Positions 600 to 9,280 of a DNA stretch of 9,344 nt are shown here, piece after piece. Where the stretch lies: positions 1 through 9,344 of the forward strand of contig CDMY01000943.1 in the NCBI GenBank assembly GCA_001179505.1. Direction: 5' to 3'. The number at the start of each line of letters is the position of its first letter. Position 1 is the first letter of the stretch. The translations under genes and the position numbers were made by a program. The DNA comes from Vitrella brassicaformis CCMP3155. Taxonomy: Eukaryota > Protista > Chromerida. Below the pieces are notes generated by a model. It searched no databases and was not told the DNA's origin. It saw only the letters and a program-made list of their open reading frames with translations.

Positions 600-1256
600 T
601 CAACTGACCTGCGCGGCAATCAAATGCCTCAGAGCTTGGGCCAAACGATGCGAGTCCGAGCGGATGGCGATGCGTAGTTTACCTCTGTACCTTCCCGTGC
701 CCAGCTCAATCCTGAGCAAACACATGAAGTGCAGCGCAACGATGGATAAGCTTATACTCGTACCGGGCGAGCACTATTGACACGCCAAATGCAGGTTTGA
801 CATCCTCAGCTCCACTGTCACGCGATGGAAGGACACCCGAAAGAACCTGAGCAGCATCAGGTTTGTATCAAAATACGTTAACCCATTCCCTGTGCCTCGT
901 ACTAGGTTGTCAGGATTTGCATCAAGCCCTGTGAGAAGCTCCAGTGCTCCTCCCTGAATGGAGTTGATAATTGTCACTGCCGAGGACAAGAAGCAGCTGA
1001 CAAGTTTCTTACTAGCTGAACGTTGCGCGCGAGATGCATCAGGGAGCCCCGAAGCCGATACGCCAAATTAACAATGCATATCGCTGACGGGCACGATTGG
1101 CAGTTGCGATTCGGAAACACACAATTATGATGCATAACATACCTTCGTGCAGAATGAAACTCTCATTTCGCCAAAGGGAAAAGAAATCTCGAGTTGGGAA
1201 CGCGCGCTTCTCCTGAACTTGTTAGAACGTCATGTGGCTCAGTTCGTCATGTGGCA

Positions 1257-1287
<31 letters not shown>

Positions 1288-1930
1288 TCTTCCTCATAGC
1301 GCGTCTTCTTACCATGAATTTCGATACGACGATTGGAAGCTTCAACTGCAGCGTCCGTGGGGTGTTGTCAGGTAGCCTGACAAGACCAACCAAACCATTA
1401 GTCTGTGACGAAGCCTGCCTGTGAAGTTACTGACAGAAACTGGATTTTTATCAGCGGGCAGCCTTCAAATGGACCTCGACATTCCACCGTCACTTCCTGA
1501 CCATGCACGAAATGTACTCGAATCAAATTGTTTGTGCGACCGCTTCCGCACCTGGCACGTTTGCTGCCTTGGAGCAAGTCGGCATTCCACGGATGATGCC
1601 GTAATCACAAGAGGCATGTGTTCCGCATCGTCGCCCCAGTCAGGGGGGGGCTGCACGCTCACGTGAAAGCTCTGAAGGACTCCGCGGGATTTGTTGCCGT
1701 AGTATACGCCCATATGTCCATCCAAACCGGTGTAGCTGGCCTTGATGCCAATCTGCAAGCAGTCAGCCTCCAACTAGGACGAGTGGATATGCAGGGTTGT
1801 ATACCTGCAGTGTGTCGTCTTCAAAGAAGACAGCATCATCCACCAAGACTAAGTGACGGAACCTGTGGGCAAGGATTCCCTTCAATTGCATTTAGTCCAA
1901 AGACATAAGTGTATAGACCTGTCATGGTTG
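600..1930 (-). CDS. AP-2 alpha-adaptin appendage (ear): Ig-like sandwich (about 1313-1930) plus platform subdomain (600-1212)
   Basis: RFRHLVLVDDAVFFEDDTLQIGIKASYTGLDGHMGVYYGNKS...QEVTVECRGPFEGCPLIKIQF...LKLPIVVSKFM...RDFFSLW...LLTGLDANPDNLVLSGVL...LARIEL...KLRIAIRSDSHRLAQALRHLIAAQVS*. This is collinear with the canonical alpha-ear motifs as I recall them (LFENQLLQIGLKSEF, FYGNK, VNIEC..F...P.L.IQF, KLPITLNKFF, DFFQRW, VDPNPENFVGAG, LLRLE, RLTLRT). Confidence 0.9.
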
Positions 1931-4900
1931 GCGAGTGCTTCTGGTGTGTTGTCGTCGGTAAGACCCAACAGAGGTGCGGGAATGTCTCCTTCGCCGATAC
2001 TATGCTGGGCAGAAAACAGCCACCGATTCACCCGCCTACAGCTGCAGCATCTGCATTCATCTAACCTGTAGATGCCATTCTGCAGTGTCACAGTGGATGT
2101 CAACAGCCGGATGATCCGCACTTCCCAAAGACCTATTGCACGCACAACGCAAACACGGCAACCCACGACATCTTTGTCTTCATCCATTCGCCTCCGTGTA
2201 TACGTGAGGCCATTTGGCATCGGCGGCGTCGCTGCTGGAGGCAAAAAGTACTCGACATGTGGATTCGAACCTCCTTCCGCTGCTCTGACAGAGGGCATTG
2301 CCGATGGCCGTGCGCGGTCCACGTTGGTGTTCAGATCGGTGGCAAGACTTCGATGCGGCCTGGACAGGTTGTGGGACAGAGGGGGAAGTCGGCCATCCTT
2401 GAAGCAGCCGACGAGAGACAGGTAACCAAGCAATCGTGCAGTGCAGTCGTTTACTCTCCCACTGGATTGCCGAATAGATGCTTCAATTGACGAAGCTCCT
2501 GCAAAGCAGGTACAATACACCTGAAAGATTGTGATTGCGTCTTTTTCGCACCTGTGTGGCTTCGACGTAGCGTTCAGTGAGCCGCACAGTATCCGACTCC
2601 TGGTTGGCAATCCTCTGCTCGGCAGCTGCAAAAGGTCAAACGGAGAGGTTACCTCTTCGTTTGTGAAACTGAGACGCGAACCATCGAGCTTGTCTGAAAG
2701 CGTAGCCGCCCGGCTGCTCTCCCTCAGCCACATCTCCTTTGCGTGGCTCACAGCATTCTCACGATCCCCAACTATCTGCTCGTAACGTTTCACGTCTTCA
2801 GTCAACGCCTGAATGGGGGTGAAAATCTGAAGACGTACGGATTTTGACGCACGCAGATACCTGTGCTCTGCCTTTCACTTCATCCAACTCCCTTTTCGTA
2901 AGGTTCAGTCCGGTCTCCGATGCATCCAGCCTCTTTTGAAGGGTTTCCACCTCCAGTCGCATCTCGCGCCGCTGGTTGTCCATCTCTAGTTGTACCTCAC
3001 TGCGGACCTCTGACTGTACATCGACCCGCCAAACATAATCCACACATCGTTAAATACCTTATACATACCCTCGACAGCCAGTTGTACCTCGATTTTTGGC
3101 CTCAGTGCTGCCTCTGCGACCTCAAGCTGAGTCTCAAGTGACTGTGGAATGCATCAAAGAGAATCCGATAATCGGTGCGTCAGATAATCCGATAATCGTA
3201 CCTCTATCCTCCTTCTCAGTGCCAGATGGCTGTCCTGCTCCATAACGCCACTTCGTCCTTGGGCTGCTGCTGGCGTGACGCCGAAAAAAGGCGCTGCATC
3301 TTTGCCCCTCGAGGGGCCTCCGTCTCCTTGTGCATCGGGCTCATCTTGTGCGCCGAGAGGGGCTGCCATCTGAGCATTCGACGACTGTGAAGGGAGGGCG
3401 GCTGCATCGTCAGCAAATGAAGCCGTGAAGGGGTCTGAGGCATCAACCTAAGATAGGAAAAGCCCCACTGGCAGTAAAGTCCATCCGCTGTTATTTCAAC
3501 CCCCTTGCCTTGCTCGGTGACTGTTCGAATCCCCATGAAGGTCCAGCGACTGGTGCGGCTGTCGTCTCATCGCCACGAGACAGAAAAGTGTCCATGCCAG
3601 CCGACACCGCGGCAGTACCAATTGGAGGCGTTGTGGTCCTGATTGAGTTCTCTGGCGCGGACGCAGCTGGCTGGAAGAAGTCGAAATCGGCAAACGCATC
3701 GAGCTGGGTCTTTGCTTTCGCGTCAACGGTAGAGCCGGTAGCGTCAGCATTGAATGAGGGGAAAGGTCCACCCGCTATCTCAGTAGAGAGACAGGCATCA
3801 ACACAACAGTCAAGCTTCAGGGCTGGATTCAAGTGAGCCTGTGCTCCCTCCAAGTATACCTGTGCCCTCGTCTGGTGCTAACTCTCTTGCCTCTGCAATC
3901 ATTTCCTTGTTTTTCTCCTCTGATTTGCCGCTATCGGATATCTTTCTCCTATCGGCAGGTGATGTACTTCTTTTCTTTCGGGGGACACTAAAGGAGGAGG
4001 CGGGCGGCGGGGCGACATCGTTCAGAGTGGTACCTGGAGCTGAAGAGCTCGGAAAGACGCTGTCACCCTACGCCGACAGGGAAACAATATGGCACATTTT
4101 CTCTGACACGATTCCGTCTTTGCTGTCTACCCAGCTGTTCTTCGCAGCACTGGGCGACGGGGCCAATACGCCGAAGGTTTCTGGAGTGGCCGGTTTGATC
4201 TCCCCTGCTGTACCATGGGCGCCAGAATGCTGAGGGGATGAGGCAACAGGAGCGGCCTCGAGCCTTGCAGGTGGGGGCGGTGGGGGAGGGGGAGAGGGGA
4301 CAGGAGAAGCCTGCATCTGTCTTTTCGTCCACTGGTCATAGGCCACAATGGCGGACGAGACACTCTCCATCGTCTGAAAGACAACACATTAATTACCTGC
4401 TATCTGTTGCATGTGCCCTGACCTTAGATATTTGTTCGAAGTCCTCCGCGTGACCAGCGTCCAATGCAGAATTCGCATCTTCCTGCAGCCGCTGCTGATC
4501 ACTACAGGCGGTGACCCCATCATGAAGATCATCGATAATGATCGAGTCACGAACAAGGTGCCCACTATTGTGAGTTACCTTCTGAGGGACTGCACTATAT
4601 CGTCGAGCATTGCCTTCATCTCGGGCCCACTCGCGGAGACAAGAGTCTCTTGCACTAGCTCCGCTGACGACATTGCAGCTGGCAGAGCGACAAAAGAGAA
4701 TAGCAGACGACTGATGAAGATCGCGGGTTCCAAAATTCTGTTCCTACCCGACAGTCTTTGCTTCAGCAATTCATCATTGGCTTTCTGATCACCACGAGAG
4801 AGTGAGTCAGCCTGCGCAGATAAACTTGCAAATATGATCTCATGACGTGAAGGGCAGCACGCTGAGGTTGAAACATGTGTCTGCCGCACCTGCCTCTCAT

Positions 4901-5716
4901 GAGGTATAGAAATACCTGAAAAGGGCAGATACCCTCGATATACTTCCGAATTGTCGATGTGCCTTTACCTTCATTAATGAGCGTCTCCCAAGCGGAGCGA
5001 AGGTGTTTGCCTCGTTCAGATGTGCTGGCAGTATTCAGCATGCCCTACATAGCGCATGCGGCAGGTGGTCACATTCATGGTGTTATGCTATGCGTGTCTG
5101 TCTCTTTCAATCGCCCACCCAGTGCTGGATCGCTCTCCCAGCTGCATCGATGCACTGGCTGACCTCACTGTCTTGAGCATTGCTTCCAAAGTAGGACGCC
5201 TTCTTTTTGGCCATACCGCGCTCCTGGAAGTCGCCAAGCATGACAAACAGAAGATGATCTTCAAGTCAAACCAGTACCTCGAACTTACGTTTTTCCGACG
5301 AGCAATTTCAAGAAGACGCTTCAACAGCTTTGACTCAATCAGACACTTCCCACAGTTCTCATCCACGCTCACAAGCGTGTCAATTAGCTGATCAGGACAC
5401 ACATGGCCACACGCGCAGCACTGATTTGCCTGTCCGTGACATCTCACCTCGACAGCGAGAATCTTGGTCTTCGTTGGCTCATTCTTGTCCTTGATAATAA
5501 CATGGAGTTGATTGATGGAAGCCCTCGCAGCATCAGGACCGGCCTGTGCAACAATATTGACCTGCGGCGTCATGCACAGGTAGTACATGTGGCACAGCAT
5601 CATGCACCGGCAGTGTGTATCTCGGTGCAGTTCCCATGACTCACCAAGGACTGAAGTTGTGCATCTAGTGTCTGTCGGCTCTCTAGAGCGGCACGTACTT
5701 GCTGAGCAACCGACAT
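600..5716 (-). CDS. Multi-exon VHS-GAT-coiled-coil-AP-2alpha-ear adaptor, about 1081 aa (Plasmodium KIC4 / Toxoplasma KAE-like, Kelch13-complex type)
   Basis: Manual splice reconstruction, minus strand, 5' to 3': 5716-5645, 5561-5448, 5387-5289, 5223-5119, 5044-4969, 4915-4890, 4811-4748, 4678-4579, 4501-4423, 4373-4131, 4067-3860, 3774-3509, 3447-3202, 3141-3069, 3009-2861, 2808-2682, 2625-2552, 2498-2455, 2359-2204, 2132-2066, 2004-1919, 1862-1805, 1752-1552, 1496-1435, 1376-1313, 1212-1143, 1083-1013, 953-903, 846-764, 711-600. All intron phases are compatible; 28 introns are GT-AG and one is GC-AG; ATG at 5716, TGA at 602-600; 3246 nt. Domain calls come from recognising family motifs by eye, not from a database search. 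A few linker junctions have in-frame alternatives. Orthology to KIC4/KAE is inferred from architecture only. Confidence 0.9.
1261..1286. repeat. (TC)13 microsatellite inside intron 25
   Basis: Directly visible. The same intron has an 11-bp direct repeat CGTCATGTGGC at 1228-1238 and 1245-1255. Confidence 0.95.
2460..3230 (-). CDS. Predicted coiled-coil segment (about 165 aa, end of exon 13 to exon 18)
   Basis: LALRRRIESLETQLEVAEAALR...EMDNQRREMRLEVETLQKRLDASETGLNLTKRELDEVKGRAQALTEDVKRYEQIVGDRENAVSHAKEMWLRESSRAATLSDKLDAAEQRIANQESDTVRLTERYVEATQELRQLKHL: E/K/R/Q-rich, nearly proline-free, with heptad hydrophobic spacing. Confidence 0.75.
3448..3508 (-). other. GC-AG intron (intron 12, 61 nt)
   Basis: Donor AAG|GCAAGG (plus strand 3507-3508) and acceptor cttag|GTT. 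Reading on without splicing hits TAA at 3493-3491, and the only nearby GT donor gives a frame that stops at about 3216. Confidence 0.7.
4330..4811 (-). CDS. GAT-like three-helix domain (exons 7-10 start)
   Basis: ELLKQRLSAAMSSAELVQETLVSASGPEMKAMLDDIVQSLRSDQQRLQEDANSALDAGHAEDFEQISKTMESVSSAIVAYDQW: three amphipathic helices directly after the VHS domain, ending in the GAT-typical '(L)..A(I/L)..Y' helix. Position and pattern fit GAT; the sequence is divergent. Confidence 0.6.
4890..5716 (-). CDS. VHS domain (exons 1-6, about aa 1-164)
   Basis: Spliced peptide MSVAQQVRAALESRQTLDAQLQSLVNIVAQAGPDAARASINQLHVIIKDKNEPTKTKILAVELIDTLVSVDENCGKCLIESKLLKRLLEIARRKN...AGRAIQHWGMLNT...AWETLINEGISIP follows the VHS pattern (GP.. 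helix, 'LLAL.LL.TLV', 'LIQ.W', terminal 'L..EG..FP'). Confidence 0.75.
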
Positions 5717-5842: not shown

Positions 5843-6405
5843 CGACAGAGGACTTGGCCGTCAGGCCGCCTAGGGTGCTTCCTGAAAACCGCTGCATTTG
5901 GTCTGACCGCCTAGGGTGTTCCATGAAACGCTGAAGAAGGGCGGATACTTCTGCCAGTGGTTCGTCGCTCTGTCTAAGAGTGTGCTTTCTGCTGATCGTG
6001 TTTCTGCTCCCTTGTGATTGATCAAACGGTACTCCATCAGTGACATATGAACAGTATGGCAACACGCAATAAGTGGCTTGCACGTGCAAGGTGGCTGACT
6101 TATCCCGTTTCAGACAGCAGATGACGAATTGGATATGAACAGCACGTGTTGGATCAGTGAGCGGTCAACGTCGAGCTCTTTTGAGTGCCATGTATATGTC
6201 TGGCTGTCTTCTCGTATATGTGCAGCCGGTGGTGACAGTGATTTTTCTGAGCATCATGGGGTGGCACGTGCATGTCGGGTGGGTGGGTGGGTGGGATGGG
6301 TAGGCATGCCGTGTGCATGACCCTATCTACGTGCATGTTCCTAGGTTAGTAGTGCAGCGGTTTCAGGGAGCACCCTAGGCGGCCTGACGGCCAAGTCCCC
6401 TGTCG
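5843..6405. repeat. Inverted repeat, 54/53-bp arms (5843-5896 and 6353-6405), 456-bp spacer
   Basis: cgacagaggacttggccgtcaggccgcctagggtgcttcctgaaaaccgctgca versus the reverse complement of the right arm, cgacaggggacttggccgtcaggccgcctagggtgctccctgaaaccgctgca: 2 mismatches and 1 indel. Confidence 0.9.
6277..6300 (+). other. G-quadruplex-forming motif (GGGT)4GGGATGGG
   Basis: Six GGG tracts separated by 1-2 nt loops. G4 folding is predicted from the motif only. Confidence 0.7.
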
Positions 6406-6716
6406 ATGGAGCTCCCGCGAACGCGGGTCGACGAACGGCTACGAGGCGGTAGGGGCCCCCTCGTAACGGAAGGCGATCGGAAAAGGACACCTTACAAAAT
6501 TGCCAGCCTGAGGATCGAATATATACTGCATTAATGGCACTAGGATGCGTAGGGTAGCTGCCGTGAAATCGAATCGTGTAAAGGCTTAGGCCGCAGAGGC
6601 GTGCGATCGGTCGATCGGAGTGTGATCGTGCGTGGCCAGTGTACATGAATCGGACTCGCAAAGACTCGGAGGGCGGGGCATTCCCAGGGCCCGTTACCGT
6701 AACTAACTAACCAACC
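6353..6716 (+). mobile_element. Repeat element A (probable SINE or truncated non-LTR retroelement 3' end) ending in an AACT/AACC tail
   Basis: Its last 164 nt (6535-6698) match 6898-7061 at about 94% and are followed by gtaactaactaaccaacc. The 5' boundary is uncertain and no ORF is recognisable. Confidence 0.5.
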
Positions 6717-7061
6717 GGCTCCATGGCCGAGTGGTTCGCCACGGAGTCATGTGAGCCGGTCGTCATGGGTTCGAGCCCTCCATCGGACCCATGGCGCAAG
6801 TTTCGGGGGGGGAGTCTAGACTAGCTACCCTAAGGATTTCACTGGACTGCCTGTCAAACGGATCTCACTGGGCGCGCCGCGAGGACCAGCCGAGGAGTGG
6901 CACTAGGATGCGTAGGGTAGCTGCCGTGAAATCGAATCGTGTAAAAGCTGAGGACACAGAGGCGTGCGATCGGTCGATCGGAGTGTGATCGTGCGTGGCC
7001 AGTGTACATGAATCGGACTCGCAAAGACTTGGGAGGCGGGGCATCCCCAGGGCTCGTAACC
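6535..7061 (+). repeat. 164-bp direct repeat (6535-6698 and 6898-7061), offset 363 bp
   Basis: Manual ungapped alignment gives 10 mismatches in 164 nt. Confidence 0.95.
6717..6791 (+). pseudogene. tRNA-like sequence (degenerate; positions 34-36 read TGT, possibly of tRNA-Thr origin)
   Basis: Starts GGCTCCATGGCCGAGTGGTT and has an intact GGTTCGA. The acceptor, anticodon and T stems carry several mismatches, so it is not a functional tRNA. The origin assignment is weak. Confidence 0.6.
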
Positions 7062-7441: not shown

Positions 7442-7741
7442 NNNNNNNNNNNNNNNNNNNNNNNNNNNNNNNNNNNNNNNNNNNNNNNNNNNNNNNNNNN
7501 NNNNNNNNNNNNNNNNNNNNNNNNNNNNNNNNNNNNNNNNNNNNNNNNNNNNNNNNNNNNNNNNNNNNNNNNNNNNNNNNNNNNNNNNNNNNNNNNNNNN
7601 NNNNNNNNNNNNNNNNNNNNNNNNNNNNNNNNNNNNNNNNNNNNNNNNNNNNNNNNNNNNNNNNNNNNNNNNNNNNNNNNNNNNNNNNNNNNNNNNNNNN
7701 NNNNNNNNNNNNNNNNNNNNNNNNNNNNNNNNNNNNNNNNN
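7442..7741. other. Assembly gap (300 N)
   Basis: Run of N; probably an estimated or placeholder length at an unresolved repeat. Confidence 0.99.
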
Positions 7742-8097
7742 CAGATCTACTCGTCTGAGCACTCCTGTGTCTGCCTGGCAGGTGTATTGATGTTTCGATT
7801 GGCCGCATTGCCGCCTTCTCTACTGCACGGTGAGCTGATGGCCGTCACGCAGGATTCTGGCACACAGATCTACTCGTCTGAGCACTCCTGTGTCTGCCTG
7901 GCAGGTGTATTGATGTTTCGATTGGCCGCATTGCCGCCTTCTCTACTGCACGGTGAGCTGATGGCCGTCACGCAGGATTCTGGCACACAGATCTACTCGT
8001 CTGAGCACTCCTGTGTCTGTCTGGCAGGTGTGTTGGTGTTTCCTCTGCCGCATTGCCGCCGTCTCTACTGCACGGTGAGCTGATGGCCGCGACGCAG
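7742..8097. repeat. 123-bp tandem repeat (minisatellite), about 2.9 visible copies, probably continuing into the gap
   Basis: Units start at 7742, 7865 and 7988 (cagatctactcgtctgagc...). Copies 1 and 2 are identical and copy 3 is diverged. A 14-nt piece of the unit (tggccgtcacgcag) lies just left of the gap at 7425-7438. Confidence 0.95.
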
Positions 8098-9280
8098 TAT
8101 TCCAGCTTATACACATATGCTCCCACATGTGTGCTCCGGTATGCCCGCGGGTCTTCCCGCACTCATTTGTATGCGCCATTGATTCGTGCATCCATAGCAT
8201 CTGAGCACAAAGCTCTTGGCGTGTTTTATCGTTAATTAATACGCCGACGGATGGGAATGCAGTGAGTGTCTATACAGCGTACATGGCATGTTGAGCGGGT
8301 CAGCTAAATATGCGTCAGAAGGATAGGAGTGCGAGAGATGTCTGACTATGCTAAAGGTCTGTTGGAGCCGGTCCGCCGCTCCTCTCCCTTGCTTGTGTCG
8401 CACCAGTAGCGGTGGGATACCGGTGGTGTAGGATTCATATTGTGTCTTTCTTGGCCGTCCCTCCCTCTATCCCAGTCTGTCTCCCTTCATGCTTCTCTTC
8501 ACGGCTCCCTTCCAATCGCCTTTTTGCTACCTGCCACGCCCTGTGCCAGCCTTTTTTTATTATGGTGTCGCGCACGTCCCAAGTGGCAGGTCTTTGCAGA
8601 CCTGCCACGCTTACGATTAATGATGGGGGGGAGGGGGAAGATTGAGACAAACAGAAGCTGCCCGTGTGAACAAACCCCTAAAAGCATGAGAAACCCCACG
8701 CGTTCCTCCTCGATCTGTCCAACATGAAAACACGCACCCTAACATGCAACACGGACACGCAACACGCAGCACGCAGAGGGCAGATGCAGCAAACAGGTGC
8801 AAATGCAAGGCGCTGCGAACGACGGCAAGTGCTGACACGCGATTTCAGACACTAGTAGTCACGCTAAAACACAACAAAACGAACCGACAGAAACGTGTCT
8901 TGGACTCTGTTGGCCGTTGCCTATTCATTCTTGACAAAAAATGTCTCCGCGGCACTCGTTGGGCCGCCCAGGCCCGGTGGGGGCCGGACTGCCACGCTCA
9001 TACCACACCCAAAGATGGTCAGATAATGTGGAGTCAAGTACACAGAACGGGCGACGATGTTCGTCTAAGCCTCAGACAAAGACACCACCGTTCGCACGAT
9101 GCAAACGGAACACCCCACACAAGGACACGAGCAAAGCTCAACGACTGCAAAAATCACAAGGAGAACGGACATAAGGATGTCGCGCACTGCACAGACACAA
9201 CCAAGCGGGGCGTGCACCCCAATGCACACGACATCCACATCATGTCAGCCGCCCCACAGCCCCGCGATTGTACGGCCCTT

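Follow-up and report, generated by a model that had tools for sequence, protein, structure and literature searches.

A probable KAE/KIC4-type adaptor gene with an alpha-adaptin ear in the chromerid Vitrella brassicaformis

Contig CDMY01000943.1 of the Vitrella brassicaformis CCMP3155 assembly (GCA_001179505.1) was analyzed over 9,344 nt, a stretch referred to here as the window. Its minus strand carries a multi-exon spliced open reading frame (ORF) that runs from an ATG at 5716-5714 to a TGA at 602-600. This ORF probably encodes a chromerid adaptor of the type described as KAE in Toxoplasma and KIC4 in Plasmodium: a single gene whose product has a putative VHS-/GAT-like N-terminus with a helical block, a coiled coil and an ear. 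The model, built by hand from three-frame printouts, has 29 exons, all on the minus strand, which is close to the 30 small exons counted in the initial annotation, and 28 introns of 49-104 nt (median 61 nt). The joined coding sequence of 3282 nt specifies ~1093 residues, has zero internal stops, and resolves every split codon. All 28 introns end in AG, and 27 begin with GT and one with GC. The reading is not altered by alternative splice sites, which are present where exon 5 ends and where exon 13 joins exon 14. A codon-usage frame test, trained on the confident exons with each left out in turn, chose the proposed frame in 20 of the 22 confident exons, and chose it also for linker exons 9-12, 18 and 19.

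All sequence searches of the gene were run on single exons. In the frame of exon 21 (1552-1752), which covers the sandwich subdomain of the ear, Pfam Alpha_adaptinC2 matched at 5.6e-5, and Pfam Alpha_adaptin_C matched the end of the last exon, exon 27 (600-711), where the platform subdomain and the reading frame both end, at 0.059 over profile positions 77-112 of 113. A full HMMER search with exon 21 against 1.8 billion library representatives returned four relatives: P0001, encoded by a paralogue elsewhere in the Vitrella genome; P0004, the Neospora caninum protein XP_003883720.1 (2206 residues), which has an alpha ear and lacks a trunk, and which is taken here as the orthologue of Toxoplasma KAE; and two shorter proteins, P0003 (472 aa) and P0006 (603 aa). 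Of the nine exons that encode the ear, eight (20-24, 25a, 25b and 27) match P0004 consecutively across residues 1952-2194 with zero overlap, and the gaps between consecutive matches are at most 2 residues up to the unmatched exon 26. Exon 20 (1805-1862), the first strand of the sandwich, corresponds to Neospora residues 1952-1969 (72% identity) and has an intron position in common with the Neospora gene; exon 21 corresponds to residues 1970-2029 (E 2e-15), exon 22 (1441-1496), also part of the sandwich, to residues 2030-2047, and exon 23 (1313-1376), which holds the sandwich end and the linker to the platform, to residues 2051-2070 (65%). In the platform, the corresponding residues are 2072-2094 for exon 24 (1143-1212), 2097-2118 for exon 25a (1013-1083) and 2159-2194 for exon 27 (E 3e-10). 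A profile of three coccidian KAEs finds solved AP-2alpha appendages at 8e-24, and pairs the F-F-x-x-W stretch of exon 24 with FFQRW of solved alpha-adaptin, a stretch that belongs to the platform motif pocket of the alpha ear. The Pfam matches, the collinearity with Neospora KAE and the match of the coccidian profile to AP-2alpha appendages together identify the ear as alpha-type. On this evidence from sequence, the two-subdomain alpha-adaptin ear (sandwich plus platform) is real and lies at the extreme C-terminus, in agreement with the complete ear proposed in the initial annotation.

Additional evidence for the ear exons came from a second KAE-type ear in the same genome, on the minus strand of contig C747 (C747:14485-15905; L009 1989-3405). 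The two ears have the same exon structure and are 62-100% identical per exon, with 71-74% identity in exon 21, 90% in exon 23, 65% in platform exon 26 (764-846), which has no Neospora match, and 100% in platform exon 25b (903-953). The paralogue product P0001 shows that the exon 25 region consists of two exons, and exon 25a was located using P0001 and L019, a JGI transcript contig that is a partly spliced copy of the C747 paralogue. Four introns removed in L019 coincide with window exon ends 1552, 1143, 1013 and 953, with transcript junctions bordering exons 22 and 25b. This partly spliced transcript therefore confirms four homologous ear junctions. The N-terminus of the C747 paralogue is not readable, because the assembly upstream of the ear is interrupted by N gaps, by duplicated sequence and by part of a copia-like RNase H/integrase (L009 ~4435-5301). 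In the window, a (CT)n microsatellite (1262-1290) lies within intron 23, which at 100 nt is the second-longest intron of the gene.

A coiled coil of ~150 residues precedes the ear and carries a conserved A-K-(E/D)-M-W-L-R-E-S motif that is also present in P0003 and P0006. It starts in exon 13 (3088-3141), which is defined by its splice borders and would end at 3069 with the alternative donor, and continues in exon 14 (2861-3013), which has splice borders and a weak match to the coiled-coil Pfam family DUF1664. Exon 15 (2682-2808) contains the motif, as A-K-E-M-W-L-R-E-S, and matches Neospora residues 1668-1706 (E 2e-9) as well as P0003 and P0006; exon 16 (2552-2625) matches Neospora residues 1708-1729 (E 0.003), right after the exon 15 match; and exon 17 (2463-2498), the end of the coiled coil, matches P0006 residues 246-255 at 70%. 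The linker that joins the coiled coil to the ear is encoded by exon 18 (2204-2397; open frame, splice sites and codon usage) and exon 19 (1919-2004; splice borders and codon usage). Exon 18b (2066-2132), between them, is uncertain: codon usage disfavours its frame, its flanking introns of 71 and 61 nt are of typical size, and the alternative is a single intron of 162 nt.

Exon 1 (5645-5716) has 24 codons, starts at the first in-frame ATG past an upstream stop, ends at a GTGAGT donor and is in the best codon-usage frame. It is followed by the exons of an N-terminal helical module: exon 2 (5448-5561), with AG/GTGAGA borders in phase 0; exon 3 (5289-5387), defined by splice borders; exon 4 (5119-5223), with an open frame, splice sites and coding codon usage; and exon 5 (4916-5044), which ends the module and has an alternative donor ~60 nt upstream. 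Exons 1-5 encode 173 residues and are directly followed by a conserved, GAT-like block of ~100 residues (exons 6-9). The coccidian consensus has a single conserved block of ~100 residues that can be aligned across window junctions 6/7 and 8/9. Exon 6 (4748-4811) starts the block, and the 6/7 junction aligns with coccidian KAE at L-S-A-A, at an intron position equal to Neospora 622/623. Exon 7 (4579-4678) is matched weakly and collinearly by the coccidian profile, immediately 5' of the match of exon 8 (4423-4501), which aligns with Neospora KAE residues 673-697 (56% identity, E 2e-6) and with the coccidian profile at E 1.7e-5. The start of exon 9 (4131-4373) continues the coccidian block after I-S-K and encodes its last helix, and the rest of the exon encodes a proline-rich linker. 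The linker extends through exon 10 (3860-4067), which is disordered, rich in basic residues and serine, and in a frame favoured by codon usage; exon 11 (3509-3774), in which the motif F-A-D-F-D-F-F aligns weakly with F-E-D-F-E-F-F of Neospora (1422-1428); and exon 12 (3202-3447), an acidic segment with a DPF motif, in the best codon-usage frame with a score equal to that of confident exons, and with a strong pyrimidine-rich acceptor.

The window gene is thus collinear with Neospora KAE exon by exon, through the exon 8 block, the coiled-coil motif and eight of the nine ear exons. The two genes also have about seven intron positions in common, within alignment resolution: the Neospora exon ends at residues 622/623, ~698, 1969, 2029, 2050, 2095 and 2159 equal window junctions 6|7, 8|9, 20|21, 21|22, 22|23, 24|25a and 26|27. 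A word search with the Neospora ear returned two further coccidians and no other organisms.

The relationship of the ear to an adaptin trunk was investigated with genome scans covering 72.7 Mb in 1064 contigs. A whole-genome scan for Adaptin_N (PF01602) gave 25 matches, none of them on the contig of the window (C943). On contig C989, Adaptin_N, Alpha_adaptinC2 and Alpha_adaptin_C follow one another on one strand, as in a canonical AP-2alpha (C989:189348-193862). The scans thus bear out both the absence of an adaptin trunk from the window gene, which the initial annotation had asserted, and the presence of a separate AP-2alpha elsewhere in the genome. Pairwise comparisons gave no support to the proposed ease of alignment between the ear and canonical AP-2alpha. 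Exon 21 alone matched no PDB chain at E<=1, and no window ear exon matched the ear of the genome's own AP-2alpha, indicating that the ear is distant from canonical alpha-adaptin and that profiles alone connect the two. Pfam recognizes the ear of the C989 gene only weakly (0.04 and 0.16), and the genome's bona fide AP-2alpha ear may accordingly be diverged as well. A diverged AP-2alpha ear has been reported for Toxoplasma.

A trunkless ear could also arise if the locus were a decaying duplicate of an AP-2alpha ear, i.e., a pseudogene, or if an assembly artefact had parted an ear from its trunk. In favour of such a reading, the contig spans just 9.3 kb and contains repeats and an N gap on the 5' side of the gene. 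The exons themselves make this explanation highly improbable: all 29 are in frame and stop-free with coding codon usage, and N-terminal exons with a start codon lie directly upstream of the rest. Moreover, the ear is nearer to Neospora KAE than to the genome's AP-2alpha, which is itself complete on C989. The gene is a real, well-preserved member of the described KAE family.

Whether the ORF represents one gene or two depends on the junction of exons 11 and 12. The frame of exon 11 stops at a TAA (3493-3491), and exon 12 is coding in a different frame. The two can be joined in frame by a GC donor at 3508 and the strong acceptor at 3447, which define an intron of 61 nt, a typical size; alternative in-frame GT donors at 3576 and 3550 are weaker and give introns of 142 and 103 nt. 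The locus could instead hold two adjacent genes, with the first encoding ~500 residues (helical N-terminus, GAT-like block and linker) and ending at the TAA at 3491, and the second encoding a short KAE-like protein from an ATG near 3369. Several observations count against a single gene. The junction requires the GC donor or a weak GT donor, with no strong GT donor to rescue a frame that runs straight into the TAA and no RNA covering the junction, and two metagenome scans, one with exons 2-3 and one with exon 12, found no RNA or other match. Short forms are also known from other eukaryotes: P0003 is encoded by a complete gene on a compact, intron-poor contig (L013:6620-8038), P0006 is a complete ORF on ~2 kb transcripts (L014-L018), and both consist solely of an N-terminal I-V-D-F-E motif, a K-E-M-W-L coiled coil and an alpha ear. 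A protein corresponding to the C-terminal half of the window product is thus a real architecture.

Other evidence argues against two genes. One Neospora protein covers exon 8, the exon 11 motif (weakly), the coiled coil and the ear, in that order, so that both sides of the TAA match the same protein, which favours a single gene. The I-V-D-F-E at which P0003 and P0006 start resembles F-A-D-F-D-F-F of exon 11 and F-E-D-F-E-F-F of Neospora; while this is a weak lead, the exon 11 motif lies upstream of the TAA, outside the putative second gene. Codon usage marks the part of exon 12 that precedes the ATG as coding, and the two genes would be only ~120 nt apart. Two adjacent genes are accordingly quite unlikely, and, judged from the DNA and its relatives, one gene probably extends across the TAA at 3491. 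P0003 and P0006 may be a second type of KAE paralogue or truncated forms. The initial annotation had described one spliced ORF joining VHS and GAT domains to an alpha ear. The spliced ORF and the ear were recovered, with the qualification that the junction at the TAA would use a GC or weak GT donor; the VHS and GAT domains were not found by sequence searches with single exons.

Searches of the N-terminal exons for VHS or GAT domains with Pfam and PDB sequences gave no match, exon by exon; this includes exon 2 (Pfam and PDB), exon 3 (Pfam) and exon 5 (PDB). Exons 1-5 have no detectable similarity to coccidian KAE N-termini in pairwise or profile comparisons, and when exons 1-9 were compared with the coccidian profile, the signal was confined to the exon 7-8 block. 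Neither the exon 6-9 block nor the coccidian block matched Pfam GAT or solved GAT domains. By eye, an N-C-G tripeptide and the hydrophobic spacing of exon 3 resemble VHS. An ESM Atlas search with exon 2, the in-frame intron and exon 3 reached HEAT-like clusters at a score of 0.82, too weak for use, and an AlphaFold model of the same 91-residue piece (pLDDT 47) was discarded.

Structure prediction was also applied to the 296 residues at the start of the large Neospora exon, using an alignment of three relatives. The model has eight main helices (pLDDT 59, pTM 0.62). Foldseek returned no matches to it. A wide structural search found VHS domains at Z 6.8-8.1, several of them covered over 85-91% of their length. 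The matches were the VHS domains of UVSSA (Z 8.1, 133 of 150 residues aligned), Hrs (Z 8.0, 128 residues), STAM2 (Z 7.6, 125 residues), a TOM1-like protein (Z 6.8, 121 of 141 residues) and GGA2 (Z 6.8, 131 of 144 residues), and the ENTH domain of TOL9 (Z 7.7, 122 of 136 residues). HEAT (importin), TOG and ARM chains tie with VHS in Z for this model, and guidance for the structural search holds that Z at this level is not decisive for helical repeats.

These data are also consistent with an N-terminus that is a generic HEAT/ARM-like repeat, or a remnant of an adaptin trunk, followed by an unrelated helical block. The missing VHS/GAT sequence signal in the window exons, the HEAT repeats among the nearest language-model clusters, at their weak score, and the equal standing of HEAT and TOG chains in the structural search are all as expected for such a repeat. 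It is nevertheless a doubtful alternative, since VHS and ENTH chains are covered nearly end to end by the Neospora model, Adaptin_N has zero matches on the contig, and a module of ~173 residues ahead of a ~100-residue helical block corresponds in size and spacing to the VHS-GAT of GGA and TOM1. Schmidt 2023 (PMC10718435) assigned VHS and GAT to KIC4 from AlphaFold models, naming TgKAE as its homologue, and this structural assignment also speaks against a repeat. Koreny 2023 (PMC10105704) found no further conserved domains in KAE. The VHS-GAT pair is plausible because the 173 residues directly abut the conserved block, a compact layout that fits such a pair. On balance, the N-terminus of the window protein is somewhat more likely to be a VHS-GAT pair than not, and the VHS-GAT label in the initial annotation is plausible and unproven.

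Evidence in support of orthology came from several features of the locus. The gene is collinear with Neospora KAE, has intron positions in common with it, is trunkless, and sits in a genome that also encodes a distinct AP-2alpha and another KAE paralogue. Together, these features support the proposal, made in the initial annotation, that the gene is an orthologue of Toxoplasma KAE and Plasmodium KIC4 in a non-apicomplexan myzozoan. Koreny 2023 (PMC10105704) reported KAE across Myzozoa, with two paralogues in chrompodellids, and the second ear on C747 is what that study would predict. The same study reported K13 in chrompodellids. Scans of the Vitrella genome for BTB and Kelch gave no clear gene with BTB followed by Kelch, a point against the proposed reading, as is the lack of detectable similarity in exons 1-5. 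Two long, intron-free Kelch-propeller ORFs, C138:75784-77490 (L011) and C776:6414-7817 (L012), are 61% identical to each other; they were not accepted as K13, since they lack BTB and their best PDB matches are designed propellers and those of KLHL/KEAP1. The search with exon 21 found no protein of the window gene among the 1.8 billion representatives, which is compatible with the expectation that the gene would be unnamed or fragmented in automated annotation.

Several features surround the gene in the window. Just upstream of the start codon, 45-nt inverted repeats (5843-5887 and 6361-6405; 96% complementary, 473 nt apart) resemble the termini of a small transposon-like insert. A 164-nt direct repeat (6535-6698 and 6898-7061; 94% identity) flanks a stretch at ~6720-6800 which by eye resembles a tRNA; searches of it with ARAGORN and Rfam found nothing. 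Further upstream, 7442-8102 holds an assembly gap of 300 N followed by a 123-nt tandem repeat (2.9 copies, 95% identity).

By analogy with work in Toxoplasma and Plasmodium, the protein would be an adaptor of the micropore, the K13 endocytic structure. Its ear may recruit accessory proteins such as Eps15L through WxxF, DPF or FxDxF-type motifs at the micropore, as proposed from Toxoplasma KAE, and the coiled coil could anchor the protein in a stable K13 ring. If the first ~173 residues form a VHS-like helical domain and exons 6-9 a GAT-like bundle, as for KIC4, the N-terminal module might contact membrane, Arf or ubiquitinated cargo, as in GGA and TOM1. The DPF motif, a poly-proline run and F-x-D-F-x-F-F in the long disordered linker are possible docking sites. 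A more tentative proposal, rated at somewhat below even chances, is that a compact helical domain is retained at the N-terminus of the chromerid KAE and abuts the exon 6-9 block at canonical VHS-GAT size and spacing. If so, the KAE/KIC4 family would have arisen, prior to the diversification of myzozoans, from a TOM1/GGA-like adaptor plus a coiled coil joined to a duplicated AP-2alpha ear; the short forms P0003 and P0006 would be secondary truncations or a second ancient paralogue; and the window gene would offer a little-diverged point of reference for a protein linked to artemisinin susceptibility. KAE is an essential protein of Toxoplasma, and the artemisinin susceptibility of Plasmodium is influenced by KIC4. 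Parasite KAE/KIC4 proteins are long and highly diverged, and hence hard to analyze. A short chromerid orthologue could define the conserved parts (the exon 6-9 block, the aromatic-acidic motif, K-E-M-W-L-R-E-S and the ear pockets) and help to date the origin of the family. Earlier publications have described this family, its distribution across Myzozoa and the proposal of a VHS-GAT-ear architecture, and the present result adds to them incrementally: the window gene extends a described family by one member and does not represent a novel kind of protein.

Like GGA and TOM1, the window protein is proposed to have an N-terminal VHS-GAT followed by a disordered hinge. In contrast, GGA has a gamma-type ear without a platform, whereas the window ear is alpha-type with a platform; TOM1 has no ear; and both lack the coiled coil of the window protein. 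The two-subdomain appendage, with F-F-x-x-W in the platform and a Y-G-N-K stretch in the sandwich, is common to AP-2 alpha-adaptin, which differs in having a HEAT trunk; pairwise similarity to the C989 AP-2alpha is undetectable. P0003 and P0006 resemble the window protein in the coiled-coil motif, in the ear (42-52% identity over the whole of exon 21) and possibly in a common aromatic-acidic motif, and differ in having neither the exon 6-9 block nor any of the N-terminal module. KIC4 of Plasmodium falciparum is alike by published description, being a TgKAE homologue with VHS, GAT, sandwich and platform and no trunk (PMC10718435). Schmidt 2023 (PMC10718435) described the VHS-GAT-ear architecture for KIC4 only and called its platform beta-adaptin-like, whereas the window and coccidian platforms match the alpha model and solved alpha appendages. 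The KAEs of Toxoplasma and Neospora differ from the window protein, which is about half as long (~1093 residues versus 2206 in Neospora), in N-terminal sequence, where similarity is undetectable, and in an insert of ~400 residues between the N-terminal module and the conserved block, which abut in the window protein. Toxoplasma KAE is located at the micropore together with Kelch13 and interacts with Eps15L through WxxF (PMC10105704). The KAEs of Toxoplasma (TGME49_272600) and Neospora (XP_003883720.1) are like the window protein in their C-terminal alpha ear, their K-(E/D)-M-W-L-R-E-S coiled coil and their exon 6-9 block; they are likewise trunkless, with a separate AP-2alpha in the genome and intron positions in common.

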